In this document: piece by piece, positions 7,392 to 27,985 of the stretch | Layout of the letters: each line of letters opens with the position of its first letter | Numbering within the stretch: the stretch's first letter is position 1 | NCBI GenBank assembly: GCA_002269645.1 | Contig: NIVC01000774.1 | Location: 128,584 to 157,416, forward strand | Direction: 5' to 3' | Origin: Macrostomum lignano | Lineage: Eukaryota | Length of the DNA stretch: 28,833 nt | Notes under the pieces: generated by a model | The model's database searches: none | The model's input: only the letters and a program-made list of their open reading frames with translations | What the model was told of the DNA's origin: nothing | Program-made: the position numbers and the translations under genes

Positions 7392-7397
7392 AATAAA
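7392..7397 (+). promoter_or_regulatory. Candidate polyadenylation signal of the FERM gene
   Basis: AATAAA ~100 nt after the candidate stop at 7287-7289. The context is AT-rich, so it could be chance. Confidence 0.3.
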
Positions 7398-7459
7398 ATT
7401 AAGTGCTGACCACAGATGTAGAATAACTAGATCGGCCACTCAGTACATTTGCGTGCAAG

Positions 7460-7793: not shown

Positions 7794-8829
7794 AAAGCTG
7801 TTTTACTAAGTATATGCAGCCCATCTAGTTATTTTAGTATCTGTGGTACTGATTGGGATTGTACCGATTTTTTATATTTAACCCGCTTTTTCAACAAAAT
7901 TGAGTTGTGTTTTTAGCATCAATTTTTTTTACTCAAATAGTCCTAGAAACATCTTTTTTTCTGGCATTTTCGTTTCTTTTTAAAATGCTAGCACACACTG
8001 ACTTCGTGGCCACACTTTTAGGGTGCTAATGTATTATTATTGCTCATGCTAACATTGCTCATGCTCAATAGGTACTCGATTCTAATTTTAGCTAAAAATC
8101 TTTGCTAAGTTTTTTTGAAACTTTTCTTTCAAATTTAGTATTATATTATAATAAAATAAAAGCACACAGACCGACTACATATAGTAACACTTGAAGTGTT
8201 TAATAAACATTTTTATGTTATATCGGTGAAGATTTTTAATCATCTCTGCGCGTACATGCTGTTTACTTTTTCAGTACGTGTCAGTTTTTGCTTTGGCTAA
8301 AAGTTTTAGCATTGGCACCTTTTTAATAGTTACTGTAGTAGCTTAGTAGTTCTATGCATTCTGTTGTATGCTCAAGTCATAACCTGATCCCATGTACGCA
8401 TTCTCCACTGTGAATATTGCTCGGCTGTTATTAATATAATTATAATATTTCTCTCTGATCTTCACTAGCTGCTATGCAATTGCAGCGGTTTTTTAAATCT
8501 TTATTAGCACTATTAATCTCACTGATTGATTGGCACTCGGTTTTTAAAACGCAAAATCTTTTTTGTGCTTTTTTATCCAGTTTATGCTGCAGTTTTATCT
8601 GCTCTTACCTGTACCTGACTTGTTTTGAATTTTAGTCTTAGTAGTTCAAATATAAATTGCTGCCTGCTTCTGTTTCAAAGTGTTCTTCACCTTACGATGG
8701 CACTGATGCAAACAATGAAAACAAACTCAATTGTATTATTGCTGTGTCAGTCTCTGCTTTGAGAATTTCATTTTTAACAATTTTAATTTATATAATAATT
8801 CCCCACCACCTGGAAACAGGATCGCACCA

Positions 8830-9260
8830 AGTGTGGGGAAGCGAATACTGGTAGCTATTTATAGTCCAGAGTCGCAGTGACTCATTATCGAAACTGAGTA
8901 TTATAGCAATCTGTTTAAGTATATCTCCAGTGTGGCAGTGACGGCAGCGGCGGGGCGTCAGTCAAGCTGAAATTCGATCCGGTATGGAGAGCAGATGGGT
9001 AAAACTGGCGTTCACAGTGAAAATAGGACAGTGGATAAAGCACAGTGGTGGGATTATCTACGAAGCAGGGTTATATGCAGCTGTTGGAGTACTGCAAAGA
9101 GTTTCACAATAGAGAGAATCTCAAAAACGCAAAAGTAAATGATTTTTTACAATAGGCACCCGCGATGGGGCAGTTGGTCAGACTACAGCTGCGTCAATGC
9201 TTGCTGCAGTTGCGTTTTGTTAAGTCATTAATAAATATACGATCATAAATTTGTGTTCCT
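8830..9260 (+). mobile_element. Decayed non-LTR retrotransposon (RTE-like APE endonuclease) remnant
   Basis: Broken frames give, in the expected order, VAIYSP, VKIG, QGYMQLLEYCKE, HPRWGSWSDY and DHKFV. These resemble the APE-domain motifs xxYAP, DFNAKIG, NG..LLE.C, HPR..W..IDY and SDH..V. There are many stops and shifts, and the comparison was from memory. Confidence 0.45.
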
Positions 9261-9707
9261 TGGCGGCAGTGCATTTCAAATGGGGGGCATCCTGGATGTT
9301 GCTATCAAAAACAGAGTCAGAATTGAGATTCGTGAAGCGGATTTACATGTACAATACAAGGCATAAATGGAGTTTATGTCTGAGCGCATCGAGATCTGCT
9401 AAAAATATTGACATCACGTTCAACTATCAGCAATACAAAGGTACCCGTTATTGTATTGAGGGTTTAAAGAAAGAGAGTTACGAATTACATTTGCGGCTTA
9501 AAAAGAGTTAGCAGACGACAGGTCATCCGTATGATTCATTGTTGAGACATCCGGTTCTGAATTGCTTCGCATTGAGCTGAGATTTAGGTGCTTTAAGAGT
9601 CAGCTACAAATGTCTTACGCCTTATTTATAGTCTTTCTGTTTGAAGTATATTCGATTAATATATTGCTTCTCCGCATTGTATTATGAATATCTTCATTGA
9701 ATCATTT

Positions 9708-9713
9708 TTTATT
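9708..9713 (-). promoter_or_regulatory. Candidate polyadenylation signal of the MLCK gene
   Basis: tttatt on + equals AATAAA on -, ~135 nt past the predicted stop at 9849-9851. Confidence 0.35.
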
Positions 9714-9848
9714 AAAGAAATTAAAACTTTTTGTTAAAATTGACATATTTTTGGAATGACCCATCCCCTGAAACTCATTGTGAGGATCGTGAAGTATTCA
9801 AAGCAAAAAACCATGCTCGTCTACTCAGCTGAGATGCGCTTTGAGGTT

Positions 9849-10548
9849 TCAGTGTTTTTTGGATGGCCCGCTGTTGCTCGATGTTCCACTGTTTGATGCT
9901 CCCGTCTTGATTGGTGCTCCTGATTTGCTTGCTGCTCCGGTGTTTTTCGATTCTCCGATGCTTGATTTTCCAAAGTTCCATTTTCCGGTGTTACTCGGTG
10001 TTCCGGTGTTCCATTTTCCGGTGTTACTCGGCGTTCCGGTGTTCCAACTTCCGGTTTTCCATTTTCCGGTGTTACCGGTACTCCATTTTCCGGTGTTACC
10101 GGTGTTCGATTTTCCGGTGGTTATGGGTGTTCCCGTATTTGATTTTCCGGTGTTTTTCGGTGTTCCGGTGTTCGATTTGTCGGTGTTACTTGATGTTTGG
10201 TGTTGCTTGGTGTTCCGGTGTTTGATTTTTCGTGTTTTCGTTTCTACTCAATTTTTCGGTGCTGCTCGGTGTTCCGTCAGTCGATTTTTCGGTGTTGCTT
10301 GGTGTTCCGGTGTTAGATTTTTCGTTGTTGCTCGGCGTTTCGGTACCCAATTTTTCGGTGCTGCTCGGTGTTCCGGTGTTCGATTTTTCGGTTTTGCTTG
10401 GCTCTTCAGGGTTTCCAATGTTGCTTGATGTTTCTGCGGTATTTGGTGCGCCGGTTTTATTGCTCGAGGTGCCGGTGTCTTTTGTTGCATCCGTCTCATT
10501 CAATTTGCCTCCCATTCTGATTAGCGCGATGATGGCGTTGAATGCTTT
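9849..10548 (-). CDS. MYLK: MLCK exon 9 (terminal): end of calmodulin-binding helix plus ~220-aa TGKSNTGTPSN-type repeat tail; two 1-nt frameshifts (~10232, ~10196)
   Basis: Acceptor ggttgcag|10548. KAFNAIIALIRMG continues RRKWH of exon 8. The repeat register is restored by adding one base in each of two homopolymers, and then reads ...KWNTGTPSNTGKWNFGK...SGPSKKH* (TGA at 9849-9851). The symbol denotes the family; orthology is not established. Confidence 0.8.
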
Positions 10549-10621
10549 CTGCAACCGAGTTTAATTTACTCATTTTAATAATAGCAGAAAGATCGAGTTT
10601 TTCTATTGGTTTTAACTACAT

Positions 10622-11031
10622 CAGATGAAGAATCCAGCTCATGGCTGCGGGCCAGATAGAGTGAAAAGGAGAGAGCGAATAAAAGATAAGAGAAGAAAGA
10701 AGAAAGAGGCAAGAGATGGGATAAGAGAAGAATAAAAAAGATAAGAGGAAAGACAAGAGCGGAGACGAGAGAAGGGAGAGAGGGGAGAGAGAGAAAATGG
10801 GAGGGAGGGGAGGATATAGGAGTGGTAGAGAGAAGAGAGGAGAGAGGGAGAGAGAGGAGAGGGGGAGAGAGGGGAGTGGGGGGAGAGAAGAGGAGAGAGA
10901 AGAGAGAGGAGAGGAGAGACAAACCTTAAGCGAGCCAGATTGCTGTTGAAAAGCTTTAAAGGACCCTAGGGTCAGATAAAGATGCTTTGTAGGCCTCATG
11001 TGGCCCGCGGGCCGGATTTTGCCGACCCCTG
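10622..11031. mobile_element. Non-autonomous hAT (Charlie/Buster-like) element in MLCK intron 8
   Basis: Right end tggcccgcgggccggattttgccgacccctg is a typical Charlie-type terminus; the left end cagatgaag...gctgcgggccagatag is degenerate. The 8-bp TSD has a central TA: aactacat (10614-10621) / aactacct (11032-11039). Confidence 0.8.
10655..10920 (+). repeat. GA-rich polypurine tract inside the hAT element
   Basis: Almost exclusively G/A for ~265 nt; the ORFs here are low-complexity artefacts. Confidence 0.9.
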
Positions 11032-11101
11032 AACTACCTAAACTGCAATTTTTCAAGAAATTTGACAAATACCCCTCCTGGGGAAAGCTAAATTTACTTA
11101 C

Positions 11102-11179
11102 GTGCCACTTTCTGCGATAGACCCAGCTCTTCAAACGTCTTTTGCAGACATGGCCCTGGTGAGTGCTGGCTTCGGGGTC
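11102..11179 (-). CDS. MYLK: MLCK exon 8 (autoinhibitory segment and start of CaM-binding region)
   Basis: tttacag|DPEASTHQGHVCKRRLKSWVYRRKWH|gtaagt; 78 nt, phase 0/0; resembles smooth-muscle MLCK KKYMARRKWQK. Confidence 0.9.
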
Positions 11180-11284
11180 CTGTAAAGGAAATTATAGCGA
11201 CGCTTAATATCGTTCCGGTTCACGTGCACTCAAGAACAGCTGAATACTCGTACATTTGAAGCAAAATAATAAAGTGAAATTCAC

Positions 11285-11330
11285 CTTCAGCCAAGAGTGC
11301 CTCAGACACTGGCTTGCTGTGAGGCGACTC
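11285..11330 (-). CDS. MYLK: MLCK exon 7 (kinase subdomain XI)
   Basis: ttttag|(K)SRLTASQCLRHSWLK|gtgaat; 46 nt, phase 2/0; canonical RxTAxQCLxHxWL. Confidence 0.92.
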
Positions 11331-12710
11331 CTAAAATTGCAGGAATTGATCATTGTGTAACGGGAGAAAGCATGTACATCGGAAAGTTAAATGGCATATG
11401 CGTAGAATGTAAAAAATAGAAAGTTAAAATCAAAATAAAGATATTGGCCACACTCTTTACAGCATACTCAATGAGTGAGTGCATCAGCGATACGGCAAAT
11501 ATATGTACGAGTACGTTAAAGGAAACTACTATTTGCCATGAATAATGGGAAGAAACTAGCAAGGTGGAAGCGCAGAAAAGTTCCTATCATATGTTGTCCG
11601 TTTTGCTTGGCATTCTCTCGGTTAGTCTTTTCTTTTGCTATTTTCTTTCCTCTCTGGCGGTGTGCGCGTGATTGACGAACCGGCCGGTCCAGACTTGGGC
11701 GCTGGCTGCCTTGTCTATCTCTATTCCTGCGCACGCCAGACCCGTATCGACCAGGTTGCTGTTGACTACCCACTCACACACTCTCTCCGCACCTATAGGC
11801 TAAACATTATTTACTTGACCAATGGCACAGTCGTTATTCTTAACAAGTTCGACCACCTCAGTGCGAGAAATGATTAGAAAAGTGTTGCCTGAAGCTTATG
11901 CATTTATTATGCCTTCGGACAGAGAATAATGGTACCCTCAATAGTTTGTCGCGAATATGATGACACAAGCAAAGGCTGCTTTTCGATTCTGATAGATGAA
12001 AGAAGACTGCGCGCTGTCCAAAGCCGGCAAGCCGCTGTTTATCTGATCTGCAGATGAAAAATCCTATGCCAAAACTTGTACTTATCTGATACTTTTTTCC
12101 GGGGGGGGGCGCCGAAGAGTCATGTGCAATCGCAAATGCCAAAGCTGGTTTTGTCTGCCGACTACGGCCAGTAGAATTAGGATTATATGGAGTTTCTGCA
12201 GCCAAATTCGTTCGCAAGAAGGCTTTACGAAGGAGTTAACTTTTAACATATATATTAAAAATAGAGCTACGCGAAAAGTGTTAAGTCTGAAAAAAAGTTT
12301 TTTCTATTGCGTTGCAAGCAATCACGCAGAATTTCTAGGTGTTGTCGAGAAACGGGAGTTCTTCTTTTGAGCGATCTGGTCAAAGATTGCGGATGTACGG
12401 TCGGTTGCTCCCGGAAAGCAGAAAAAGAATTGACTAGTACACTTTGTAATCCTTATTGGAATGATAACGTTTACCTATTGAATTCGGTCTTTCTGGACGT
12501 GTACCAAGTATGATGCAAGGACCACTGTAGTATGACAGGACATAAAACCTAAAAATCGTGCATTTTAGGAGGCCAATTTCTTGGAAATAATACACTGCAT
12601 TACAAAATCAATGATTGCATTGGAATTGTGGCAGTGAAGATTACCATTTCTATAATTCTCAGTTATATTCTGTGTAGTTGTTGTTAAAGTTTTATTTTCC
12701 TATTGTTTTC

Positions 12711-12906
12711 TTTTTTCATAAGCCCAAAATCGTAAACACTCCAAGTGGCACTAGCTTAACTTTTCGTTTTGTTCATTCTTGAATCGAGTGTATTTGTAAT
12801 AAAAATGTTGCACGCAGGTATTTTAAAGCCACTATTTTGAAGGTACAATTCAATTTCAATGAAAATTAGTTCCTTCGTGCATACAACTTTGGGCTTATGA
12901 AAAAAA
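12711..12906. repeat. Imperfect ~24-bp inverted repeat (possible MITE remnant) in MLCK intron 6
   Basis: ttttttcataagcccaaaatcgta (12711-12734) versus tacaactttgggcttatgaaaaaa (~12882-12905); 18 contiguous complementary bases. Confidence 0.5.
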
Positions 12907-13140
12907 ACGAATTTTCCCTATTCTCCGCAGTGTATTTTTCCAAGAAATGGGCCTCCAAAAATTACACGATTAAAGAGCTTTACGTCCTTGTATACTAAAG
13001 TAGTCCTTGGTATGATGTGCGCCCTACATTCACCAAAAGTGCATTGCCGCATTGCAATGCCTGCATGTCTTTCCCGTACCCCACGGCGCCTCCAGATCTG
13101 GTTCGACTTTCAAATAAGCAAACGAATCGATTAAACTCAC

Positions 13141-13293
13141 TTGGCGTCCTTCTGCAGCAGGCGTCTGACAAAGTCCCTGGCATCGGCCGAGATCTCGTCA
13201 AATTCTGGGAACTCGAACGAGTAGGACACCTTCGCGATGTTGGAGTAGGTCTCGCCGTCATTGTCGCCCATGAAGGGAGACAGTCCGGAAAGG
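13141..13293 (-). CDS. MYLK: MLCK exon 6
   Basis: tttcag|LSGLSPFMGDNDGETYSNIAKVSYSFEFPEFDEISADARDFVRRLLQKDA|gtgagt; 153 nt, phase 2/2. Confidence 0.95.
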
Positions 13294-13384
13294 CTGAAAC
13301 GATACACAGATTTCCCTTTAATGAAGCTGCTTTGATGGTTTAGCATACTTTTATGGTGTATACTCAGTTGCTCAACCAAAATAT

Positions 13385-13765
13385 TGGTAAAAATTGCGGA
13401 GGGCTACGGGCACCCTAGTGCAACGCCTTCGGCCAGATCGTCTCACAACGGTGATGCAATTCTGCCCATTCCGCTGACCCCTGAGCACATGCGAGCGTAC
13501 CAGCGCGCACAATACTGTACGCAGACACGCACTCATGCACACGCTCCCACAGGGTGTAAGAGTACAGCGGCCCTGACTTTCTAATCGTCAGGCATGTACA
13601 CTCTCTGTGCCTTGGGGGCTGGCCCTCACGGCTGTGAATCGCACGACAACCTCCGGCTAATTTTACGTTCTCAAGCCGCAAATCAATTCTGCCGCACACA
13701 GATTCGAAGCAGGGGTCGTGACGCGAAAGTCAGAGCGGCTCTGCTACTATCAACCAACTGGATTA
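13385..13765 (-). mobile_element. tRNA-derived SINE, family B, copy B2 (MLCK intron 5)
   Basis: Head with B-box-like gcttcgaatct. The body gagggccagcccccaaggcacagagagtgtacatgcctgac...gtcagggccgctgtac and the 3' module tgctcaggggtcagcggaatgggcagaattgc match copies B3 and B4. Confidence 0.8.
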
Positions 13766-13778
13766 GTTAGCGACTCAC

Positions 13779-13972
13779 AGGACGTAGCAGATTACACCGA
13801 CGGACCACATGTCAGCAGGCGGACCGATCGACTCGTAGGCCAGCACCTCGGGCGACACGAACTCCGGCGTGCCGAACATGACGCGCAGGTCCGGGGCGCA
13901 GTAGCGGGACAGGCCGAAGTCGATGATCTTGATGCGGTAGCCGGTGCGAGTCAGGCACAGAATATTCTCCGG
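13779..13972 (-). CDS. MYLK: MLCK exon 5 (PEN, DFG, activation segment, DMWSVG)
   Basis: cccacag|PENILCLTRTGYRIKIIDFGLSRYCAPDLRVMFGTPEFVSPEVLAYESIGPPADMWSVGVICYV|gtgagt; 194 nt, phase 0/2. Confidence 0.95.
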
Positions 13973-14047
13973 CTGTGGGAGGTGGTCGGCAATTCGTTAA
14001 TGGAAACAGCCAGGCTTACAGTTATATTTAAATTCACAGATGCCAAC

Positions 14048-14189
14048 CTTAAGATCTAGGTGAATAACATTCTGCGAGTGGATGTACTCAATGCCCTCGC
14101 AGATCTCTCGCATGAACTTTTCGCACTTCGCTTCCGTCAGATCGAAGCTTTCATCGATGACCCGGTCAAATAGTTCACCGCCAGTTATG
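14048..14189 (-). CDS. MYLK: MLCK exon 4 (hinge to catalytic loop)
   Basis: ttccag|ITGGELFDRVIDESFDLTEAKCEKFMREICEGIEYIHSQNVIHLDLK|gttggc; HLDLKPEN is typical of the MLCK group; 142 nt, phase 2/0. Confidence 0.95.
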
Positions 14190-14210
14190 CTGGAATTAGA
14201 AATCAATTTC

Positions 14211-14433
14211 ATAATAATAATAATAATAATAAATAATCGCAAGAGGGTTGCGGGCACCCGGGCGCAACGTCTACGGTGACATCGTCCCGAAACCAGCGCT
14301 GTGGCAGTTCTGCCCACCCTGAGCACATACTACCGTACGCACTCGTAGACATGCTGACACATGGTGTGCGGTGTCAAACCAGAAGTCCTGATGCGGGAGT
14401 AAGACGCGTTTACCATTAAGCTACTCTGCCCCC
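14211..14433 (-). mobile_element. Short tRNA-derived SINE (family C) sharing the family-B 3' module, with (ATT)n tail
   Basis: Head ggggcagagtagcttaatggtaaacgcg...ggtttgacacc; then tgctcagggtgggcagaactgcc...gacgatgtc...ttgcgcccgggtgcccgcaaccc; tail (att)n at 14211-14233. Confidence 0.7.
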
Positions 14434-14569
14434 AGATCGGTGCTATTAGATGGTCTTTTTGCATTGTGAATATTTCGGCTAACAACTAGCTGGCCGGGAA
14501 ATTTTATACAAGTTTACAGTGAGTTAATTAGCGACTGTTTGCCGCCAGTTCGCCGCCAGAATCTCTATA

Positions 14570-14877
14570 GAGTTGTAGCCTAGTGGTCAGAGCGTCGGAC
14601 TCACGACTTGAAGGTCGGGGGTTCGATTCTCGACCCACTCGGAACAATTTGTGTCCCTGAGAAAGACACTTAACTCTGCATTGCTTCAGTTCACCCAACT
14701 GTAAAATGGGTGCCAGCATTAGCTGGGGTAATTGAGGGTATGTGTGGCAACCCCCCAGTCCTTGGACTGAACAGCCGTACGCGGCCTTCATATGCGCCGC
14801 GCAATAGCTGCGGCTGAGCTGTCGGTTGCATATCCGCCAATTTAAGCAGGTGTAATGAATTATTATTATTATTATTA
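14570..14877 (+). mobile_element. tRNA-derived SINE, family A (CORE-like), copy A2 with (ATT)n tail
   Basis: A box tagcctagtgg, B box ggttcgattc, CORE-like centre and (att)n tail; aligns end to end with 1098-1390. Confidence 0.9.
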
Positions 14878-14975
14878 CAGTGAAACAGCATTTTAATATT
14901 TGATAATACATGAGCCTCAGTTTACTGTAAATATGCATCTGATCAGCAGCCTAGAGGAGCTCCCCCGAAACTCAC

Positions 14976-15179
14976 AGCTCCAAGATGAGCACGTAGGTAT
15001 TTCGAAAAAAGTAGGCATCGTACAGCTGAAGCAGGCGCGGGTGCTTCAGCTTCTTCATGATGGCGATCTCGCTGCACACGTTCTCCTTGTCGTTTTCGCA
15101 AGAAGTGGCGACGTACTTGGCTGCGAACGGCTTTGAAGTGGACCTTTCGGTGCACTTGTGCACCTCGCCGAATCGGCCG
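14976..15179 (-). CDS. MYLK: MLCK exon 3 (Gly loop, ATP-binding Lys, helix C)
   Basis: gacag|GRFGEVHKCTERSTSKPFAAKYV...CSEIAIMKKLKHPRLLQLYDAYFFRNTYVLILE|gtgagt; 204 nt, phase 2/2. Confidence 0.95.
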
Positions 15180-15405
15180 CTGTCATTGGGATATTGTGCA
15201 GAAATTGATGCATAAATTCTATTAAATTACTAACAAAATCGAACATAGTTTGTATTCTAAACTTCTATTTTCTCCCATTTTCTCCCTAGACTCATTGCAC
15301 ACGCTTAGAAACGGTTTAATGATGATTAAAAACGGAATAAACTTGATTAAAAAATATATATGCTCTTTGATGTTGAGAAAAATTTTAAGAAACGATCTCA
15401 CTCAC

Positions 15406-15499
15406 TTCCCAATGACCTCCTCGATGATGTAGTCTTTTTCCACATTTCTGTTTTTCTTGATTTCCACCTTCTTCTTTAGCACATTCGGGTCCGTTTCGT
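15406..15499 (-). CDS. MYLK: MLCK exon 2
   Basis: cttttag|(D)ETDPNVLKKKVEIKKNRNVEKDYIIEEVIG(N)|gtgagt; 94 nt, phase 1/2; leads directly into GNGRFG. Confidence 0.9.
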
Positions 15500-16612
15500 C
15501 TAAAAGGTACAATTAACAGTTCGGCAATGGTCTGGAGACACGCAGGAATTTTCAGACAAGCGCATGCTGTCGCAGATAATTTATAGGTGCAGCTTTCCTC
15601 CGAGTTCAGGGCCTTATGGGTTGAACGGCTCATACATAAGTACTACTTGTAAATAAGTTAATTAACCTGTCTGACAGCCAAATATTTTGCATCAACCAAA
15701 TAGAGAAAAAGGGAAGGCAATGCCCAACAGTTGATAAACATATTTCTGGCATAGCATCGAACATCAACCGGCATCGAAATGAATGCGTATTCTGAAAAAT
15801 GCGGGTCGAAATCTGCCCGTCCTCCATTGCCAAAGTCAGCTTCCCACCCACACAGACACTGGGGACAGCAAAGAACAGAGCGGTTTCACTAAAAACACCA
15901 GATGGCCAGCCGCTTCCCGGATGCCATCGGATCCGAGTCACCCACCTTCGGCCTTCCAGCGCTTTTCAAACCCTATATGTGGACTGACTCGCACGATCCA
16001 TCAAAGGCACACGGGACGAGAGACCAAAAACTGCGGATAGCGCAAAGTCGGGTTACTCCCGTCTGCCCCCTGTCCACCCCCAGCTGCCCTCCACTGTGGC
16101 TCGCACTCTGTAGGGCAAAGATGCAGTACAGCTGCTTGCATTTGTTAGATATCAGCAGCGCAGTCACGGGACCCGTTGCCCCGTACCGGCCCTAGCTATC
16201 CTATCTCCTGCGTCTCAGTTTCTAATACCGCTTTAAAATCTCTCATGTGCATGCAGATTAGCATTGCCGACTCCCCAATGCCGCTCTCCATTCCCAAAGC
16301 GCATTTTTTAACGCAAAAACTGAGGCTAGCCACACAATCCTAGTGTTAAATGAAACCGCAGCACCCGTGGCCAATCCACCCGACCTATACACGTAGATGC
16401 CTTCAAAACATTGTTGCGTTGTATGCAAGTGTCAAGTGCTGCGTTGATTAGCTTTGGTTCCAGAGGCGTGGCCGAGGATACCCGATCTGCAGATCTGCAT
16501 ATCATTAAATGGCATTCACGAGTTGCCATATGACCACTGTAACTCGCCATTAAGCTGAAAATAGATGCTATATCAAATCATGGAGTCGAGCGACCGAAAT
16601 GATCGACAGTTG

Positions 16613-16826
16613 TGCAAGGACCACTAGAGGATATCGTTGTACTGTTGTAAAATACACCTATTCTAGAGCTTCTGAGGCTCGAAGGTAGTGCAAGTTTCTT
16701 TAAAACAATCGAGTAAGATGCTTTTTTGAAGGCAAGAATCGCCAAATACACATAAACAAGCGGGCCTTCAAATAATTTTGCAATATTTGCGTCCTGATAC
16801 AATGGTAACTTCTAGTGGTCCTTGCA
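16613..16826. mobile_element. 214-bp non-autonomous element with TG...CA ends, 16-bp perfect TIR and 4-bp TSD
   Basis: tgcaaggaccactaga (16613-16628) / tctagtggtccttgca (16811-16826), flanked by GTTG on both sides (16609-16612, 16827-16830). Confidence 0.8.
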
Positions 16827-17026
16827 GTTGTTCAAGACGTCAAGTAAGGGGACTAAATACGTATAGGTATAGTTTCAGTCAGAATATCGGGACTCAGTGT
16901 GTCAGACGCAAGGTCACGATCAAATTGCCATAGCATTATGACTGCCTTGTACATCATAAGTACTTTATAACAGTATCGAGAAGGCAATCTAGGTGTATTA
17001 ATGATGTTTCAACTGTAACTGCTCAC

Positions 17027-17090
17027 CCGGATCCACCTGAATCTCAACGGCGCCCTGCTTCTGGAAGGTTTTGAAGACGCTCTTCAGCAT
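17027..17090 (-). CDS. MYLK: Candidate first coding exon of MLCK
   Basis: aaaATG...MLKSVFKTFQKQGAVEIQVDP+g|gtgagc; phase 1 joins exon 2 as ...QVDPDETDP. The sum of exons gives a ~558-aa protein after correcting two tail frameshifts. Confidence 0.65.
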
Positions 17091-19553
17091 TTTATTACGC
17101 CAGGAGGAGGCTGTGTCAAGTCACGAATATGCAATTGATTCTGATTTTCCAGAGGCTTCTGTATTTTGCTGCTGGACTTGGAGCTTCTTAGGGAATGCCG
17201 TCTTCCATTGAGGCAATCCAGAAGTGAGTTCGCTGTGGCGTTGAGTTGCACAGTTACTGTTAAAGGTAAGACAGATTATTTTCGTATGGAAAATATCGCA
17301 TGAATAGTTTTACTAGTCATCCCTTGATCTTACGGATTTAGGGTTTATTAAGTATTAAAGCATTTAAAGTAGTAGGAAGAGTAGACTTGCTACTTGTGGC
17401 TGAGTAACAGACAACTTTGTCGCAACTTGTCAGGTAGAAAGTTTCATTTTTGCTCCTTTAGTGTCAAGCCTTTTATGCCCCGGAAACGACTAAAGTTTGC
17501 ATCTGCAGAATCTGTCGATCTGCAGAACTGGTAGCGGTCTCACACTGCTGCTAATCTCTAAAATCTACAATTGATAGCTTCATCGCCACCTTCTGCTTTT
17601 TTATCAGTAGATTTCAGTTATCTTGACCACAAATTACTGATTACGATTGTCTGGTGCTCTTTGCTACGACGTTAATGATTTGAGATCACTAAGCAGCTGG
17701 TAAATAAGAATGCAAGCCCAGTGAAAGCGGGAAGGCAAATGAACTAAAATGATTTTAAACAGAGATAGATGCCTTGTTTACCTGGTGGCGGCAACTCATA
17801 TAATCTGAAGGTCGCTCTGCCTGAAACTTAAATGCCGCGATCGCCTTTGGCTTTCTGATTATCCGCTCAGACCGGGTAATTAAAGACGGAAAGTCTCGCT
17901 CTGATGTATAACGTCTGCAAGGTTTTAGCTATGAGGCATGGATCCCCCAAGTCGGAATGACGGAGAAAAAAACGAAAAGGCGATTGGGAGGCCAGTTAAA
18001 CAGACGAAGAGAGAGAGAGAGAGAGATCTGGACGGGGATGCTGGAGGCAAAAGCTGCGTGCAGGCACAAATAGAGCAGCAGCGATAGAGCCAATGGCGGC
18101 ATGAATATACAAGCATCCGGGGGGAAGGTGGTCGCCCATCCGAAACTCTCGCGCATTCCACCAGCCCTCCCACGAAACCAGCCGCGCTTCGGATCCCCGC
18201 ACACTGATCTCCCGCGCTCCCAGCGCAAAGCTTGGGGAGAGGGATCCGAGAGTGGAGGAAGCAGCGGGGCCGCTACCCACCAGAGGCTGATTCTAGCATC
18301 TTCCCCTCGAAATCCCAGCAGTTCTCTGATTTCGTCTGCATATTGCAGGCTATAGGGCCAGCTACAACAGGCCGGAGCGGGGGCCCCAATCAATCGATCG
18401 CCCCGCCCCCCGCTTCTGTTACCTTTCGTTCCCCCTATCTCCATAAGCTTAACCCGCCGGCTCTTTCCTGACGCACACGCAGCTGCTAGCCTCTCCTCCA
18501 CTCGGTAATGAACGAAGCAGCTGAGGGGAGGGGGGGGTAATGATCGCATTAGAGGCAGCGCTGCAAGCAGCATGCAGGGAAGGATGCATATTGCATAGCC
18601 CCACTATTTTCTTCTCCTGTTTTCCCCTTCAAGCAGTCCTAGCTCGTTTGCCTTGCACATCGCAATCAATTTGCATTTCAAACAGCTATTTTTTCGGCAC
18701 TATGTGCACGAGACTGGCGGAACAATAAAAGTCTGTTGGCATTCCGTCCGTACACCGGAGGTGCAAATCCTCAAAAGCGTAACGCAGATTTCCACCCGTT
18801 TCATACAGTAAAAAACAGAATTGCATAGTACAGTAGGAAGGCTTTCAACTTCCCTACCCGAAATTCACCAAAACCTATTCGTATGGATCAGCAGATGAGC
18901 GACAGGCGAAATCTAACCGTCTGGCGAAAATATTTGTACCAAATTGCACCCCTATCCTGATATGGTGGTCAAACATGCATCATGTAAATTATTATCCTTT
19001 TTTCTAAAATTTCAAACTGCGAATAAAGGTTTAACGAGTACATAATTTTAGTTCGTAGAGATCAGAGTCGTAATGCATAACTCGAAATCTACGTATCTAA
19101 ATATATAACTACATATAAGTGTATGTACATTTTCAAAAGTTGAAAAAATCTTATTTTATCTTGATTACTCCTTGGCTTTGGATCAAGCTGACACTACGGA
19201 ATTACACTACGGAAAACTCAACACGCATACATGTATTGTATCGACTTTTCCAATGTTTGGATCGAAAGAAAAGCTTATTCTGACTAGTTGCAGCCATCGG
19301 AAGAATATTTAGTCTATTGGAAATACCTTTTTATATTAGTTTTTATATGGATTTTTATGTGCCAACTTATAGAGATTTTGTGGAAATAACTGATCTTTTT
19401 CGATATTTTGTACATATTAAATATATATGCCATTTAAGTAGATTGACTCGGCATAAATATAGGGCGATTAAAAGGTTTTTTAGCTGCTTAATTAGTTGGA
19501 ATTTACTAGACTTAGTTAAAATTAAATTTTAGTTGCAACAACCATTTTCTAAT

Positions 19554-19726
19554 TAGGCGTGTAGTAGCCAGGATTCACGTCAAGGTGGCTGGGACAGATC
19601 GAGAGACATCAATCCATCTCATTATTAAATGACGTGTAGAAACCAAAAGCAGATACAAAAGCAGTAAAAAATTATCTCCCCCAGGGAGACATGTCCCCGG
19701 TGTCCCCCCTCTTGGCTACGCCCCTA
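19554..19726. mobile_element. 173-bp hAT-type MITE
   Basis: Ends taggcgtgtagtagcca... / ...tggctacgccccta; perfect 8-bp TSD tttctaat at 19546-19553 and 19727-19734. Confidence 0.8.
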
Positions 19727-21120
19727 TTTCTAATTAAACTGAAATATTGTCTGTACATACCGTGTCCTTTATTACTTAAAGTTCTAAAATTCTAAAAACA
19801 ACTAACCGTGTAGAGGTCAACTTCTAGGTCTGCGTCTTATTTTTATTGTTTAATAATAATTCTCTTATCAGGCTAATAACAATATTTTCGATCTTCCTGT
19901 GAAATTTTTGTTTTTCTTTTTAAATGTTCAAAAGATACATTCTAAGAAATAGATGACATTTGATCGATTTGTACATAATTGAAAACTGCAATGCCGATTG
20001 TAATGATTGTAGTAAATAGGCATTTTAAGACTTTGTACTTGCTCACTACACTGGTGCTAGTATTTTTCCTCATTTACGCGTAGGCCTACACTGATTTTGG
20101 GTGATTAAATAGTTCACTAGGTGGCACAGCTTCCTGACTGAATTCATTTTGGTATAGCGGATTCAAGAATCAAAATAACTTGTGCGAATGCATATTAAGG
20201 CTTAGGTTTCCATTACAGCATGCCATAAGGCACAAGCAAGCCTTTTAAAAAATGAAGTTTTTTGTATATCATGTACATTGTCAGGCCGTTATACAATGTC
20301 AATGTCAATAGACGTCACATGAAAAGGAAAGCGAAAAAATGTGTAGCTAGACAGAAGTCTGTTGATACTATTTTGTGTATATATTTTTAACATCTACTTA
20401 TCAGGCAAATCTAGTTAGTAGTTGCCAGTGGTGTAACAGAAAATTTGTTGTCATTAAATTAAGAAAATATGCCAGTTTAACATAATAGATCCCATATTGT
20501 CAGGTAAATAAAAAGTTTTTTAGAAAATTTAATATATTGTTATATGAATACTTTATTTAAGGCTGTTCACACTGCCATCAAAGGAGGCCAATTTTCAATT
20601 GATTACACAAAATTTGATTTGATGATTAATGAATCCTTGACAATACTTCAGTTTTTCATGCCATTAGACCTATTCATCAATTGACTTTATGAGTGATTAC
20701 AAGCATTCACACTGCAATCAACTAACTGATACTAAGGAGAATGACTAGGCTAGGGTTTAAAAAAGGTGATGCAAGTTTTCTTATTGATTGCACAAGCAAT
20801 ATTGTGCGTATATATTGAAACTAAGCCTAAATTTTGTGTATATATTTTCAATAGATTTTAGAAAACTATTTTGTGCTCTGAATTCAATACCAATGTATAG
20901 TCTATATTAAAGTATAAAGGCTAGCACTCTTATTGACATAACTGGCTTAAGCTAATAAAAACCAAGCATAGTACAATTTTCTAATTGTCCTTTTTCCTAG
21001 TATTTAATTGTCAAGGTGCTGAAGGTTATATAAAATGAGATTTTCTTGCACCTTGTTACCAGGGGTTCTAGTGGCAATTAATAAGCATACTGTTTTTTCA
21101 TGCTTGCTCATTTCACTTGT

Positions 21121-21365
21121 CATAAGTTGGCAAACTTTTTATCTTAAGGGCCAGATAGAGAACTTAGAGCATGACTACAGTCCTAGAGATGAGGGAATAA
21201 AAAGGAGATATAGGAAAGGAAAGGTAAGGGAATAATAGAGCACAGAGAAGATGAGAGGAAAAAAGAGATAAATTAGGTAGAGAGTAGAAAAGAGGAGAGG
21301 GAGAAGAGGAAAAAGAGAGGAAAGGAGAGAGAAAATAAGAGAGAAAAAAGAGAGAAAAGATGAGA
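21121..21365 (+). mobile_element. Decayed Charlie-like hAT terminus followed by a GA-rich tract
   Basis: cataagttggcaaactttttatcttaagggccagatagag resembles CAGGGGTCGGCAAACTTTTT...AAGGGCCAGATAG termini and shares gggccagatagag plus a GA tract with the element at 10622. The other end was not found. Confidence 0.45.
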
Positions 21366-22275
21366 GTGTTGTGGCACTGATGATTAATAAAGCATTTTAT
21401 TAATTGTAAAATATTCCTATAGATATGCGAAGGGATTTGTGCATTACAGGTATAAGCTTGAAGCCAGCGAATGCTAGGAAAAATTTACAAGCACATAAAA
21501 GAGCTAAGAGCTCATTTTGAATTAAGAACTTGTAGTAATTTGTGTCTCACAACTTCAATCTAATTCATCAAAAAAGTGGAGAACACAATAGAAGAGAAGA
21601 AAAAAGAGAAAAGTGCTGAAAAAAGACAAACATTGAGTGGGCTAGATTACTATTGTAGAGTTTCTAAGGACCAAATGGAGAGTTGTTGAAATAGAGTGGC
21701 TTGAGTTGAGTTTTGTGTGTTGTGCAACTTGGGGTACTATGTAAGAGGCAAGCAACCAATGTATAGCATTTTAGTTGATCAACTAGCCCTTGCATTATTA
21801 GCTTTTGTCACTAAATTTGAGATTTCAAGCAATTAGGAAAAAATTAAAAAATAATATGTGGTTAAACAAGTCATATGATTTGGTCCCTCATTTGATTGCA
21901 GTGTGCATAAGCCTTTAGATATTATAAACTGGAACACCAAAAAGCAATCTAGGGTACTGAAATACTAAGCACCAAAAACATGGGTGCCAAAAGCATAGAA
22001 ACTAATATTACTTATACTACCCCTTAGGTTGAGTCTAGGTGATACACTGTCACTTTCTCTGCCACTTTTTTGTATGCTAGCAGATAAAATGACTTTAAAA
22101 ATAGAAGTAAAACTAGCCAAAGGGCTTGTTACCTTAATTCCATCAATTGGTTATTCTATACAAAAAAAATATATGGCAATCTTTATCATAAAAATTTTAA
22201 TTGTAGCATTTTTTCTCATTTCTTATTTAGATTTTGATTTCAATATCTCCTAAGCATCCTCCAATAGCAAAAAAT

Positions 22276-22435
22276 CTTAGCAATTTCCCCAGTAAGCCTT
22301 GACATCTCAATAATTCTCCCAGTTAGCCTTGACAACTCAGTAATTCCTCCAATTAGTCTTGACAACTCAGCAACTCCACTAAACCTTGACATCTAAGGAA
22401 TTCCCCTAGTAAATCTTGACATCTCAGCAATTCTT
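22276..22435. repeat. Degenerate ~30-bp tandem repeat, ~5 copies
   Basis: (c/t)cttgaca recurs at ~22297, 22327, 22357, 22384 and 22414. Looser ccctttagcagtctgcag-like repeats continue to ~22980. Confidence 0.75.
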
Positions 22436-24140
22436 AAGATATCCTACAACAACCTGAAATTATTCCTTCTAATCCTACAAAACAGACTACAGTCATACTC
22501 TTAGCAGCCTATAGTCTACAACTTTTTAAAACTTTTAATGTTTATTAAGCATTTATCCTTTTAGCAGCCTAAAACTCCCCCCTTTAGCAAACCACAATAA
22601 TTCACTAGGCAGTAACAGTAAGCAGTAATCCCCTTAACAACCTCTACTTAATCTTCCACAGTTTTTACCCACTCAAAACTTAATAGTTAGTTATCCTTTT
22701 CAGAAGTCTGCCATCATCCTCCAAGCAGTCTGCAGTTATCCCCCTTAGCAATTTGCAGCTATACACTTATAAGTCCAGAGGAATTACCTTAGTAGTTTGT
22801 CATTTGTCCCCTTTGCAGTCTGCAATGATCCCTTTAACAATCTTTGATTCTCCTCAGTAGCCTGTAGTCATTCTATTTGTATATTACAACTATTCCTTTA
22901 ACAATTCTTATTTATCCTTTCAGCAGTATGTAGTTCTCCTCTTGGCTAGCACTTTAGTCTCTTAGCAAACTGAAATGATCCTTTCAATAATCAAATTTTT
23001 TTAGCATTTAGTATAGCTCACTAATCAATTTTTGACACTGTACAACTTAAAATTTAGCAATATACTCAATATCAGTTTAAATATATTTAGCAGCATTGTT
23101 GTAATTTAGTAATTTCATACTTTCATAGAGCTAGGCAATACCTATTGATGGATCAGTAATACTTAGGCAATTTTTTACAAAAAAATTTGCCTAGTAGACT
23201 TATGCCAAATAGCAAAAATAATATTTTAAGTGTACCTTGCTAAAATAAAAAATGTCCAATTTTCATTACAAGCTACAAATGAATGAATAAATTCAATTTT
23301 AATTGTCCCTTGGCAGGTAACTCAAACTTGGGACCTTACACATAGTCTAAACTAGTGCTAATGCCTATAGTATAGACAATTCCACCTATTGATAATAGGG
23401 CAAGAAAATCAGCCATATTGCTTTGCCACTGCAGTCAAATACATAACAATGATAGGTTACTCAGTGTGCACAGGTTGTGTGTAGGCAGAGCCTAAGTGCA
23501 GTTGAATGAGCTATATTAATAGCTATTTTATATATATTTTGCTAGTTAGCCAGGGTCAGAATACACATACACATACACATACATTTTTATAAAGCATTTG
23601 AAATGGACTTGACCTGCTTATCATAGTATTATACAAAGATCTATGTTCAGATAATAGCAAATAAGAGTAACAGTCTCTATTTTATTAACTTAGAATATAT
23701 AACCAACTATTGTTAAAAAGAGAAAGAAAGAGAAAGAGAAATGAATCAAAGAGAATATCAAAGAGAAAGATATGAATTATTTCATTATAGGACTCTGTTA
23801 TAGACTGTTTACTAACCATAAAAGATTTTGAAAGACTTTCTAGGAAAGCCATTATTGTGATTTGATTAATGGTATATTTCTTGTACTTTAAGTCTTAATA
23901 ATTTAGGCATGCATAGACTTAATAAGTCAATTTTCAGTCATTCAATCAAATCAATAAATCAAAAATGAAATCAGTCCAGCTAAATGTCCACTCGCAGTTG
24001 AAAAGTTGCAGGTCACAGGTGATGCTTGCATGAAATGTTAAATTGTATACTATATGCTTTGTTATACTAGAGCCTATTTTACATGTCTGGTAGGGGCATC
24101 AGGTTTGTATCTAGGCCCTTAAATCTTATTTTTACTCTTT

Positions 24141-24500
24141 CATGGCCTAGTGGTCTAGCGCGGTGCTCTCATGTGCCAGTGGTCCAGTTTGGGGCTGAAT
24201 TGGAATCTCGGCTTGGCTCTGCTCGTGCAATTAATGCCCTTGAGGGCCAACCCCAAGGCACAGTGAAGTGTACATGCCTAACGATAAATAAAGTTAAGGG
24301 CCGCTGTACACTCCTGTGTGAGTGTGTGCCTGTGCGTATGACTGCGTACGTACGTATCCGCGCGCTTGTGTGCCTGCTCAGGGAAGTCGGCGGAATAATG
24401 GGCAGTAATGCCTCTCGTCGGTTGTGTGACAATGTCGCTTAAAGTGCGCCAGCGTGTCCACAGCCCCTGCCTATAGATTTAGATTTTTTATAAAATAATA
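24141..24500 (+). mobile_element. tRNA-derived SINE, family B, copy B3
   Basis: A box tggcctagtgg; the B box is eroded. The body aligns closely with the reverse complement of 25056-25396. Confidence 0.85.
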
Positions 24501-25055
24501 AATCTGTACCATTCTAGTAACGGAACGCGGCATGTTCATTGTAGCTGATTCACAACCTCACATTGCATTTAGCGATGCCAATAAAAATGGAAAATGCTAC
24601 TAAAAAGAGAGGAGAGACCAAACAGATTTTTTTAGCTTTTTTTCTTTGCGTGAAAATTGCTGCCCGGAGTTGCTGGCTCTGTCCGCTGTGTGTATTGCGC
24701 TGCACAGTTGACTGCAGGGACACGGATCTGCGCAGCTGGTCTAGGATTTCTTAAGGCCACCAGACTTTGTCTTAATGCCGCTAGCTGCATAAACAGATTC
24801 TTTCTTGGGAATGCTTTGGGAGACAAGCCAATGGAATAAGTTCAGTGCAGGCGAAGGTTAGCTAGATAAGGTAGCTGCCTGCTGTTTCTGTTGTGTACTT
24901 GTTTGGCTTTCCAGCGTCTAGCTAAGGTCAAGTAGCCCGGCCTGTCTGCGGTATAACTACCAAAAATCATGTGCTTCTGGATAATTGCATCAGTGCATGT
25001 GAAAAATGATCTAGCAAAACGTGTCACTCGTAACAAGGTGACTGACAGCAGCTGT

Positions 25056-25396
25056 TAATTAATATTATTATAGGACGGGCTGTGTGCACCCTGGCGCACT
25101 TTTAGCGACTGTCAACCGGCGAGAGGCATTACTGCCCATTCTTCCATCGACGCCCCCTGAGCAGGCACACAAGCGCGCGGATACGTAGGCAGTCATATAC
25201 ACACAGGCACACACTCACACAGGAGTGTACAGCGGCCCTTAACTTTATTTATCGTTAGGCATGTACACTTCACTGTGCCTTGGGGGTTGGCCCTCAAAGT
25301 TCCAGGTTAGCCCCAAATTAATGTGGCTGCACTTGGAATCGAGCCTGGGCCGCTGGCATATAAGAGCGCCGCGATAGATCACTGGGCTACGGCCCC
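25056..25396 (-). mobile_element. tRNA-derived SINE, family B, copy B4
   Basis: Head ggggccgtagcccagtga...ggctcgattcc; body and 3' module as in B3; AT-rich tail at 25056-25072. Confidence 0.85.
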
Positions 25397-25530
25397 TCGA
25401 CATTAGTAAAGTTAATATCTGCACCAATAGAAATTCCTGTGAGCTGCACCATGTGTATTACTGCTAATGTTTAAATGTTGATTATTGTATCATGTTGCAT
25501 TTATGCCCAATTAGAACGCGCATCAAATCA

Positions 25531-26001
25531 ATGGCTGGTGACAATTCTTTAAAGTCCTTCACTGTGTGGGTCCTAGTAGCTCTGACCACCGGCGCTAGCG
25601 CGGTTGTCATGACAACAGTATGGCTAACTAAGTACCTTGGCGGATTCGACTGGAACAATGAAAAAGTGTTCAACTACCATCCGCTGTTCATGGTCATCGG
25701 TATGGTGTTTTTGTACGCCAATTCCGCATTGGTTTATCGCGTCTTTCGCAACAGTCGCAAGCCTTTATTGAAGAGTGTGCACGGAATCCATGGCACTCGT
25801 GTTCAGCATAGTAGGCCTAGTTGCTGTGTTTAAGTTTCACAACCTGCCTACCCACAATATACCCAATATGTACAGTCTGCACTCTTGGATCGGCCTAGCG
25901 GTTGTCATCCTGTTCTGCATGCAATGGGTCATCGCTTTTGTCGCGTTCGTATTCCCGACATTGTCGGATTCTCTGCGGGCCTCTTATCTCAGTATGCATC
26001 G
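25531..26001 (+). CDS. CYB561: Cytochrome b561-family (CYB561/CYBRD1-like transmembrane ascorbate-dependent reductase), coding exon 1; frameshift at ~25785
   Basis: MAGDNSLKSF...VFNYHPLFMVIG...LYANSALVYRVFR...LLKSVHG / MALVFSIVGLVAVFKFHN...NMYSLHSWIG...YLSMH(R)|gtatgt. The four canonical haem His are in NYHP, VHG, SLHSW and MHR. The symbol denotes the family. Confidence 0.9.
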
Positions 26002-26047
26002 GTATGTTCATGCCATTTATTACTTATGTCTAGTGCTACTCCTTGAC

Positions 26048-26328
26048 CATCTACCAATGCTTATCTACCAGTGCCACTCCACCTGTGCTTATTTACCAGT
26101 GCCACTCCAATGCTTATCTACCAGTACCACTCCACCAATGCTTATCTACCAGTACCACTCCACCAATGCTTATCTACCAGTACCACTCCACCAATGCTTA
26201 TCTACCAGTGCCACTCCACCAATGCTTATCTACCAGTGCCACTCCACCAATGCCCATCTCCCAGTGCCACTCCACCAATGCTTATCTACCAGTGCCACTC
26301 CACCAATGCCCATCTCCCAGTGCCACTC
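26048..26328. repeat. Intronic minisatellite, 28-bp unit, ~10 copies (cytochrome b561 intron)
   Basis: Unit ccactccaccaatgcttatctaccagt(g/a); period of 28 at 26111, 26139 and 26167. Confidence 0.95.
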
Positions 26329-26373
26329 AAGCAACGCTAACTTGTCATTTCCCCACGCCCAATAACCCCGCAG

Positions 26374-26617
26374 GTTCTGGGGCGCCGGCATATTGTTGGC
26401 TCCGTGGCCAGCTGCCTGCTAGGCCTAACAGAGAAGAATTTCTTCGCTGGCAACTATGCCAAGCTGCCTGACGCTGCCAAGCTGTCGAATTGCCTTGGCC
26501 TGGTGCTCAGCGCCTACGCAATTTTAATTGTCTACATTCTGGCGCGAGGATTTCCGCCGCTTGGAGTCGGCCACCACGCCCGAGCGGGTGGAGCTTCGTC
26601 AAGGCGGAGACAAATAG
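26374..26617 (+). CDS. CYB561: Cytochrome b561 terminal exon; probable frameshifts at ~26398 and ~26545
   Basis: Acceptor ccccgcag|26374 (phase 2). FWGAGILL[G]SVASCLLGLTEKNFF...LSNCLGLVLSAYAILIVYILA then, after a shift, EDFRRLESATTPERVELRQGGDK* (TAG 26615-26617), which matches the family ending I...xFKR. The exact stop is inferred. Confidence 0.8.
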
Positions 26618-27263
26618 ACGCAGAGACAATATTGGGTTTATTCATTTTAGTTATTAGGCAGACAAAATTCTATAAGTATATTTCTTACCATCTAGTATAG
26701 CCTATTAGTGTTAAAAATGCATGGTAGATAGGATAGATCTAGTCTCAATATTATTGGCCTCTAATCATCTAGGCCTTCTGTTTAATCTGTATCCTATTGT
26801 AAATAATCTTTCTCTATGTTATAGTCAAATATAAGTATTAGTTAATGCTCTATAGTATATCGTCTCATTTGATTAATTCGTATATTAAAATATTGTTTAT
26901 TTAATTAGTTACTTTATAACCTTCGCTTTCTCTTTAATATTCCGGTGTTAGGTCCTTAAGTAGTATGTTCGGTGCATGCTTGCTTCAATTCAATTGACCT
27001 TTTATTTAGCCATATGATTATGCGTACAAGAATCAGAACAGAAGTTTTCAGTGCATCTTCAACTATATGTATTTCTTGTGTATCGGCAAAGCAATTTTAG
27101 GCGCTGCTTTTCATCTTATGGTTTTAGGCTGCTTGTGAATAAGTTTCTCTCGATCAACTATTTTCTACTTATTCTGTTTCATTCAATAAGTGTCATTTTC
27201 TTTGAAACACGCTTCATACTGCTGCCTTGGTTACTTCGTTTGCTAGCATTGTATTGTAGCTTA

Positions 27264-27985
27264 TGGGATAGTGGCACCCAGCCATGCACCAAAGTGACTG
27301 CTGTGGATAGTGGCACCCAGCCCATGTACCAAAGTGCCTGCTGAGGATAGTGGCACCCAGCCCGTGCACCAAAGCGCCTGCTGTGGGATAGTGGCACCCA
27401 GCCCATGCACTAAAGTGCCTGCTGTGGAATAGTGGCACCCAGCCCATGCACCAAAGTGCCTGCCGTGGGATAGTGGCACCCAGCTTACCAAAGCGCCTGC
27501 TGTGGGATGTGGCACCCAGCCCATGCACCAAAGTGCCTGCTGTGGGATAGTGGCACCCAGCCCGTGCACCAAAGTGCCTGCTGTGGGATAGTGGCACCAG
27601 CCCATGCACCAAAGTGCCTGCTGAGGGATAGTGGGATAGTGGCACCCAGCCCGTGCACCAAAGTGCCTGCTGTGGTATAGTGGGATAGTGGCACCCAGCT
27701 CACCAAAGCGCCTGCTGTGGGATAGTGGCACCCAGCCCATGCACTAAAGTGCCTGCTGTGGGATAGTGGCACCCAGCCCGTGCACCAAAGTGCCTGCTGT
27801 GGGATAGTGGCACCCAGCCCGTGCACCAAAGTGCCTGCTGTGGGATAGTGGCACCCAGCCCATGCACCAAAGTTCCTGCTGTGGGATAGTGGCACCCAGC
27901 CCATGCACCAAAGTGCCTGCTGGGATAGTGGCACCCAGCCCATGCACTAAAGTGCCTGCCGTGGGATAGTGCACAGTGGCACCCA
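27264..27985. repeat. Minisatellite, 41-bp unit, ~17-18 copies
   Basis: Unit gggatagtggcacccagccc(a/g)tgcaccaaagtgcctgctgt; period of 41 at 27801 and 27842. Confidence 0.97.

Follow-up and report, generated by a model that had tools for sequence, protein, structure and literature searches.

A sharply bounded CpG desert in an intergenic spacer of Macrostomum lignano is best read as a product of local cytosine hypermutation

The locus

Between a kinase gene and a cytochrome b561 gene, the genome of the flatworm Macrostomum lignano contains a sharply bounded block of 3826 bp with only four CpG dinucleotides. The block, here called the CpG desert, occupies positions 148916-152741 of contig NIVC01000774.1 in assembly GCA_002269645.1 (Mlig_3_7). 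The last 28.8 kb of this contig (28,833 nucleotides) were analyzed and are referred to as the window; coordinates are those of the window unless another contig or locus is named. The assembly was made from PacBio reads with Canu and polished with Illumina reads, and many loci in it are present as several copies owing to chromosome duplications (PMC5730564). The desert lies inside an 8.4-kb spacer that separates the two genes, which are divergently oriented. The main features are as follows.

10186-17090, minus strand: MLCK-like kinase gene, flanking the spacer
20287-20332, no strand: left edge, where CpG-normal DNA that is equally AT-rich ends with its last three CpGs
20333-24158, no strand: CpG desert, 3826 bp, 32.4% GC, 4 CpGs, observed/expected CpG ratio (o/e) 0.040, non-coding
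21469-23992, no strand: core of the desert, 2.5 kb with zero CpG
24141-24505, plus strand: repeat resembling a short interspersed element (SINE-like), with an A/T-rich tail, at the right edge; CpG o/e 0.84; present in all three copies of the locus
From 25522, plus strand: cytochrome b561 gene, flanking the spacer

Joined together, the kinase exons (11207-15512, minus strand) match BOX15_Mlig005017g3 of M. lignano with 100% identity. No annotated gene lies within the desert. Its longest open reading frame (ORF) has at most 74 aa, and roughly 8% of the codons are stops (one frame counted), approximately the expectation for AT-rich random sequence. A Pfam search of all six frames gave no match, and Rfam, whether with gathering or with E-value thresholds, gave nothing on the desert; no tRNA was found either. 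No candidates came from a protein search that used the longest desert ORF and cytochrome b561 exon 1, and two window ORFs looked up by their exact products had no record.

Extent and composition of the desert

An exact count places CpGs at 20287, 20313 and 20332, then at 20807, 21428, 21468 and 23993, and then at 24159 and 24161. The original prediction, a by-eye reading of the sequence, had also found four CGs in the block; the one it placed near 20797 is at 20807 and the other three positions were right. CpG-free sequence runs for up to 2525 bp (21468-23993), in agreement with the roughly 2.5 kb predicted, while elsewhere in the window the maximum is 335 bp. Base frequencies in the desert are A.352, C.161, G.163 and T.324. 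As an AT-rich control, 25 intervals of 500 bp with <40% GC were taken from elsewhere in the window. Their mean CpG o/e is 0.83 (0.83-0.84), against 0.04 in the desert. From this control about 84 CpGs would be expected in the desert, compared with the 4 observed (Poisson P(X<=4) ~1e-30), and 4 CpGs would still be improbable under a vertebrate-like o/e of 0.2 (P ~1.6e-5). The AT-rich stretch at 7300-8800 does keep its CGs, as had been claimed, with 23 CpGs. GC dinucleotides had been described as common in the desert, and GpC o/e is indeed 1.40, versus 1.34 in the rest of the window. The depletion is thus specific to CpG. The trinucleotides TAG and CTA, noted earlier as frequent, are 1.38-fold above the AT-rich control, and CTAG has an o/e of 2.36 (27 sites).

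Two compositional features were given other causes. C>A (G>T) conversion at CpG was considered as the source of an excess of AGG/CCT and AG/CT; it is speculative, and the excess was judged to be due to purine and pyrimidine tracts instead. A large palindrome was considered as the cause of a flip in GC skew at about 22000 and was rejected, as the inverted repeats are short and have no common center; the flip reflects a GA-rich tract and a CT-rich minisatellite. Another CpG-poor part of the window, 27264-27971, is a GC-rich (60%) tandem array with a CpG o/e of 0.16 and a TG+CA o/e of 2.0. This array-type depletion has the TpG/CpA excess that the desert does not have.

At the left edge CpG spacing changes from about 40 bp to about 1 kb inside 100 bp. 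The left flank (18740-20332) has 35% GC and a CpG o/e of 0.93. Between copies of the locus its transitions are very few (6, versus 16 transversions). The flank is situated directly upstream of the kinase gene's GC-rich 5' region, and may be constrained or shielded from deamination. At the right edge the predicted CpG-bearing SINE from about 24141 was found at the boundary (see list). This SINE-like element may act as a domain barrier, or may merely mark an old junction. Further copies of its family are present in the window.

13437-13646, minus strand: further copy of the right-edge SINE-like family
25069-25400, minus strand: further copy of the right-edge SINE-like family

The copies at 24141-24505 and 25069-25400 form an inverted pair, 88% identical, on either side of some 560 bp directly upstream of cytochrome b561. 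Another dispersed SINE-like family is represented at 1103-1397 and 14572-14867 (90% identical).

The desert in three copies of the locus

Three more contigs were reached through cluster members of the kinase and cytochrome b561 proteins. One alignment (L003) ends at window position 19460, short of the desert. L004 (NIVC01004510.1) aligns to window 9164-26338 with 98.5% identity, and L006 and L002 (NIVC01001558.1) align to the whole locus with 95-98.6% identity. In a three-way alignment of the window, L004 and L006, the desert is present in all three copies with identical edges.

Window copy: desert of 3826 bp, 4 CpGs
L004 copy: desert of 4530 bp, 4 CpGs
L006 copy: desert of 3631 bp, 2 CpGs

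The three copies differ from one another by 1.5-1.9%, plus large indels. CpGs of the flanks are conserved among them (46/49/49 on the left, 84/85/84 on the right). Clearly, the depletion is real, very strong and conserved. Because the same desert with the same edges occurs in three copies, the block predates their divergence and is not an assembly artifact, a chimera or a recent insertion. The possibility of a chimeric join at the boundaries, raised in the original prediction, is answered by identical junctions on both sides on three contigs.

The few remaining CpGs and one deletion junction were placed on the alignment.

20807-20808, no strand: residual CpG common to the window and L004, within a 196-bp segment missing from L006
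21428-21429, no strand: residual CpG in the window copy only, a CA>CG gain by parsimony
21468-21469, no strand: residual CpG, ancestral, kept in the window and L006, TG in L004
23561-23615, no strand: (ATACAC)n microsatellite and deletion junction in the three-copy alignment
23993-23994, no strand: residual CpG common to all three copies

At window position ~23611, L004 retains about 600 bp of additional DNA, unique and CpG-free, which is missing from the window and from L006 with differing breakpoints. The different breakpoints indicate independent deletions, and therefore an ancestral desert of at least 4.5 kb. The deletion site (window 23561-23615; L004 2777-3532; L006 8061-8106) adjoins the (ATACAC)n microsatellite and the direct repeat 'CATTTTTATA', which suggests a local deletion hotspot. 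Short near-identical direct repeats also occur in the left part of the desert, at 20369-20390 and 20831-20851 (461 bp apart) and at 20566-20581 and 20706-20721 (140 bp apart). These repeats surround the 196-bp segment that L006 lacks, and hint that a local duplication took place here long ago.

Native origin of the desert

Relics of repeats that occur elsewhere in the genome are found inside the desert.

10565-11031, plus strand: outside, CpG-bearing copy of an element, in the kinase gene; a relic of this element lies in the desert
21180-21623, plus strand: low-complexity purine (GA) tracts; the GA-rich minisatellite of the outside element (10575-10922) is collinear with them
21624-21672, plus strand: element relic, matching unique sequence at 10916-10964 beside the element end at 11031
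22250-22990, plus strand: degenerate pyrimidine-rich minisatellite, best-kept 30-bp units at 22274-22434

The element relic is 75.5% identical to its outside counterpart (E = 3.7e-4), and the L006 copy of the relic 77.6% (E = 3e-5). The minisatellite units at 22274-22434 match a CpG-bearing array at L006 17327-17430 (74% identity, E = 2e-10). In the secure part of the relic alignment, the outside CpG at 10929 (GCG) aligns with GTG in the desert. For three more outside CpGs, closer to the end of the element, the desert has TG or CA, in a part of the alignment that is less secure. Recoding the sequence as purine/pyrimidine to find paralogues of greater divergence brought up the element and minisatellite families and no others. 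The idea of a decayed transposable-element terminus inside the desert stands in altered form: the 10-mer at 21127 is not in collinear register with the element end (11031), and it is in the relic at 21624-21672 that an outside CpG aligns with TG.

Since outside copies of the desert repeats carry CpGs, the block is old native repeat DNA and not an import. Exact-pattern scans of viral and metagenome collections with a desert 27-mer and the SINE core gave no match, and a blastn comparison with plasmid and phage sequences was equally negative. At the desert edges, no target-site duplication, terminal inverted repeat (TIR) or long terminal repeat (LTR) was found, and none of the three copies that reach the block shows an empty site. 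With no empty site, insertion signature or foreign match, and with native relics inside, the suggestion of a foreign CpG-poor insertion was abandoned.

Substitutions among the copies

Substitutions were polarized by the majority of the three copies, and columns near gaps were discarded. The neighboring baseline is 7.2 kb of CpG-normal DNA (11050-18730).

Transitions at CpG cytosines: neighboring DNA 5/720, desert 1/4
C>T at non-CpG cytosines: neighboring DNA 23/2622, desert 34/1074
T>C at T/A: neighboring DNA 29/3870, desert 12/2170
Transversions: neighboring DNA 42/7212, desert 24/3248

Non-CpG C>T change is raised in the desert relative to the neighboring DNA (odds ratio 3.7, P = 2e-6), and also relative to the equally AT-rich left flank (2/440; odds ratio 7.2, P = 7e-4). 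The excess persists when both repetitive blocks are left out (odds ratio 2.7, P = 0.006). T>C changes and transversions in the desert are at baseline. The C>T events are spread over all three lineages (11/12/16). The predicted locally hypermutated domain amid CpG-normal DNA is thereby borne out, with C>T raised 2.7-3.7 fold in all three copies. CpGs outside the desert are not hypermutable: in all outside DNA they changed at 8/965 sites, versus 36/3711 at other cytosines.

One of the three ancestral desert CpGs mutated from CG to TG, in L004. Three new CpGs arose in the desert (2 by CA>CG), compared with 6.4 expected from the baseline (P = 0.12). CpG gain is thus about neutral, yet each copy holds only 2-4 CpGs. 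This implies either that CpGs are removed fast or that the block was fully CpG-free about 1.5 branch lengths before the copies split.

Neighboring genes and mobile elements

On the window contig cytochrome b561 is annotated (25492-26700) as two partial models of 103 aa and 262 aa. The models on the homeologous contigs have 244-245 aa, and the window gene model looks fragmented.

An LTR retrotransposon at window position ~18735 is found only in the L006/L002 copy (L002 1-8358, L006 1-3415). It has an intact 771-aa reverse transcriptase/RNase H ORF (L002 2898-5213, minus strand) and a normal CpG o/e of 0.7-0.9. Its absence from the window and L004 indicates a young, possibly active element. The same copy alone carries, in a kinase intron, a non-autonomous insertion of 3.2 kb bounded by 32-bp terminal inverted repeats (L002 10591-13807, window ~16500). 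The middle of this insertion (L002 12104-13040) is a sharply bounded, non-repetitive stretch of 937 bp with 27.5% GC and 1 CpG; the arms have CpG o/e of 0.95 and 1.38.

Sustained deamination as the preferred explanation

A methylation-based reading is favored because CpGs were erased specifically, and in an old native block, because the C>T excess is confined to that block and because the CpGs of the flanks are not hypermutable. We give about an even chance to the proposal that the desert is a sharply bounded domain of sustained deamination, most likely arising from dense, long-lasting 5-methylcytosine (5mC) in the germ line; it would then be a small methylated island in a genome with few other traces of methylation. 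Old, native, non-coding, repeat-derived DNA would sit in a sharply bounded chromatin domain of fast cytosine loss. Near-complete CpG methylation in this domain would remove CpGs about as fast as mutation makes them, with a steady state of 2-4 per 4 kb. A weaker action on non-CpG cytosines would keep lowering the GC content. Continued C>T change at CpA and TpG would erase the usual TpG/CpA footprint, and changes of the CCAG>CTAG type, one of which is visible in the paralogue alignment, would feed the excess of CTAG and TAG.

Decay of this type does occur in the M. lignano genome, as indicated by CpG hypermutability at L007 (NIVC01002517.1), an independent 28-kb locus. CpG transitions there number 13/441, versus 26/1979 at other cytosines (P = 0.02, ~2.3 times), unlike at the window locus. 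M. lignano is reported to retain DNMT1 and DNMT3 and to have 5mC at a low level (PMC11292947, PMC9246332 and PMC10658182, all of which cite Wasik et al. 2015).

Several observations weigh against this explanation. The TpG/CpA excess expected of long-term decay is absent, with an o/e of 1.13 in the desert versus 1.10 in the control. The C>T excess is uneven: the GA-rich tract contributes 12/156, and slippage there may mimic G/A changes, while 20333-21180 has only 1/175, which is the baseline level. CpG hypermutability within the desert comes from one event at four sites, and the paralogue alignments are short. A steady-state o/e of 0.04 needs CpG loss at some 20-50x the baseline C>T rate, by a rough estimate. 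Substantial non-CpG methylation in an animal germ line is unusual. Finally, it is from the sequence pattern that we infer that 5mC lies on the desert and is the cause, that it acts in the germ line, and that the SINE-like element marks a domain boundary.

Alternative explanations

The block may have lost its CpGs elsewhere, in a methylated or heterochromatic compartment or as part of a CpG-free repeat family, and then moved to its present place shortly before the copies diverged, so that the edges are junctions. The edges are very sharp, and the right one coincides with a repeat insertion. The roughly 3 ancestral CpGs fit a CpG-free start followed by ~1.5 branch lengths of neutral evolution before the split. 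CpG-free DNA can also travel in mobile elements, as the 937-bp, 1-CpG block in the TIR insertion (L002 12104-13040) shows. However, the block is missing from no copy, and its edges have none of the insertion signatures described above. Since the split, all three copies have gone on accumulating an excess of C>T, which argues that the locus itself is hypermutable now. Relocation also only shifts the question of CpG loss to another place. We regard it as possible, if unlikely.

Enzymatic, defense-type hypermutation of repeat-derived DNA, independent of CpG methylation and resembling either repeat-induced point mutation (RIP) or the action of AID/APOBEC, is improbable. The block does consist of repeat relics, and non-CpG C>T change is raised in all contexts. 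It is more frequent after a pyrimidine (YpC 27/569) than after a purine (RpC 12/580), and is highest at CpC (14/203 in the desert vs 9/997 outside). CTAG and TAG are enriched as CCAG>CTAG and CAG>TAG changes would make them, and the CCAG>CTAG-type change in the paralogue alignment is of this kind. On the other side, the CpC signal comes mostly from the GA-rich tract. A RIP-like process had been suggested originally, but the RIP index (CpA+TpG)/(ApC+GpT) is 475/356 = 1.33, not below ~1.03, CpA is not depleted, and TpA/ApT is 398/380 = 1.05. The APOBEC-like alternative fares no better: on the plus strand the desert has 21 C>T and 18 G>A changes, mixed along the block and among lineages and following base composition, with no strand-coordinated clusters. 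The homeologous DNA is all duplicated, and the flanks are nevertheless untouched. We know of no such deaminase that removes CpG near-completely yet spares about two thirds of the other cytosines.

By a founder effect, the block would derive from amplified short CpG-free minisatellite units and would never have had CpGs. Such arrays abound in the genome. L007 is half tandem repeat, with periods of 4-47 bp and arrays up to 2.6 kb, and each of the six CpG-free gaps in it (0.6-1 kb) consists of CpG-free units in tandem. A caution follows for the M. lignano genome, where CpG-free gaps are mostly just minisatellites. Within the desert, 22250-22990 and 21180-21660 are degenerate arrays; repetitiveness exceeds that of dinucleotide shuffles only in 22250-22990 and, more weakly, in 21180-21660 and 20333-21180. 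Against an origin from arrays, internal repetition extends over only about a third of the desert, Tandem Repeats Finder covers only ~10% of it, and the repetitiveness of 21660-22250 and 22990-24158 (1.76 kb together, with 1 CpG) does not exceed that of dinucleotide shuffles or control DNA. The additional ~600 bp in L004 showed no match to itself other than the trivial one, and none to other parts of the loci fetched. Arrays too old to be recognized would have regained CpGs, at an estimated ~6 gains per 2.6% tree length, and the paralogous array at L006 17327-17430 does hold CpGs. A founder effect therefore has little chance of accounting for the desert.

An artifact, whether assembly chimera, contaminant, cloning vector or base-calling errors at methylated sites, was considered on account of the sharp edges and the position of the window at a contig end, but nothing in its favor was found and its probability is negligible, given three contigs with concordant junctions, native repeats inside the block, no plasmid, phage, viral or metagenome match, and an assembly from PacBio reads plus Pilon, to which nanopore 5mC base-calling error does not apply.

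Comparison with known systems

Methylation-driven CpG depletion is known from the bulk of vertebrate genomes and their CpG deserts and, in invertebrates with mosaic methylation, from the compartment of low CpG o/e. The desert resembles it in CpG-specific loss with normal GpC, in its AT-rich non-coding sequence, in turnover between CG and TG/CA, and in a host with DNMT1 and DNMT3. At an o/e of 0.02-0.04, however, it is far deeper than the depletion in vertebrates (~0.2) or in methylated genes of invertebrates (0.3-0.5). It is also a 4-kb intergenic island with edges of less than 100 bp amid CpG-normal DNA, the inverse of a CpG island, and it has no TpG/CpA excess and raised non-CpG C>T. Invertebrate methylation is normally on gene bodies, whereas the desert lies in a spacer.

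RIP in fungi produces AT-rich isochores, and some basidiomycetes have CpG- or TCG-targeted hypermutation of repeats. These systems share with the desert a sharply bounded, AT-enriched, repeat-derived block with a C>T excess and normal DNA beside it. The desert differs in its RIP indices, its animal host, the sparing of duplicated flanks, and CpG rather than CpA as the main target. APOBEC and AID leave editing footprints in vertebrate retroelements. An excess of C>T or G>A in repeat-derived DNA is common to both, and a weak YpC preference may be; strand-coordinated clusters and retroelement structure are absent from the desert, and its CpG loss is near-total. The CpG-free minisatellite arrays of M. 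lignano itself, as at L007, likewise have sharp edges, and 22250-22990 is such an array, but the desert consists mostly of unique sequence and exceeds every array-type gap seen fourfold in length.

The desert is unusual in the depth of the depletion, its sharp-edged intergenic site, the involvement of non-CpG cytosines and the missing TpG/CpA footprint. It is best read as an inverse CpG island formed by local cytosine hypermutation, a variant of methylation-type CpG erosion.

Significance

M. lignano is the transgenic model among the free-living flatworms, which are a gap in the map of animal methylation. A 2022 review described the genomic pattern of methylation as not known for a single free-living flatworm (PMC9246332). 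A wider, doubtful extension of the deamination proposal is that the sparse 5mC of M. lignano is not on gene bodies but in insulated, non-genic, repeat-derived islands, in which cytosines of all contexts would be methylated or deaminated and gradually lost, and tRNA-derived SINE-like elements would serve as barriers, an animal counterpart of RIP. If local methylation did form the desert, intergenic repeat relics would be targeted and sharply insulated, with a role for non-CpG cytosines, unlike the gene-body pattern of other invertebrates. If it is ordinary old methylated DNA, the desert would still be a useful marker for annotating such domains. As a mutational footprint, it would predict the place and strength of germline methylation, or of another cytosine-specific process, in M. 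lignano.

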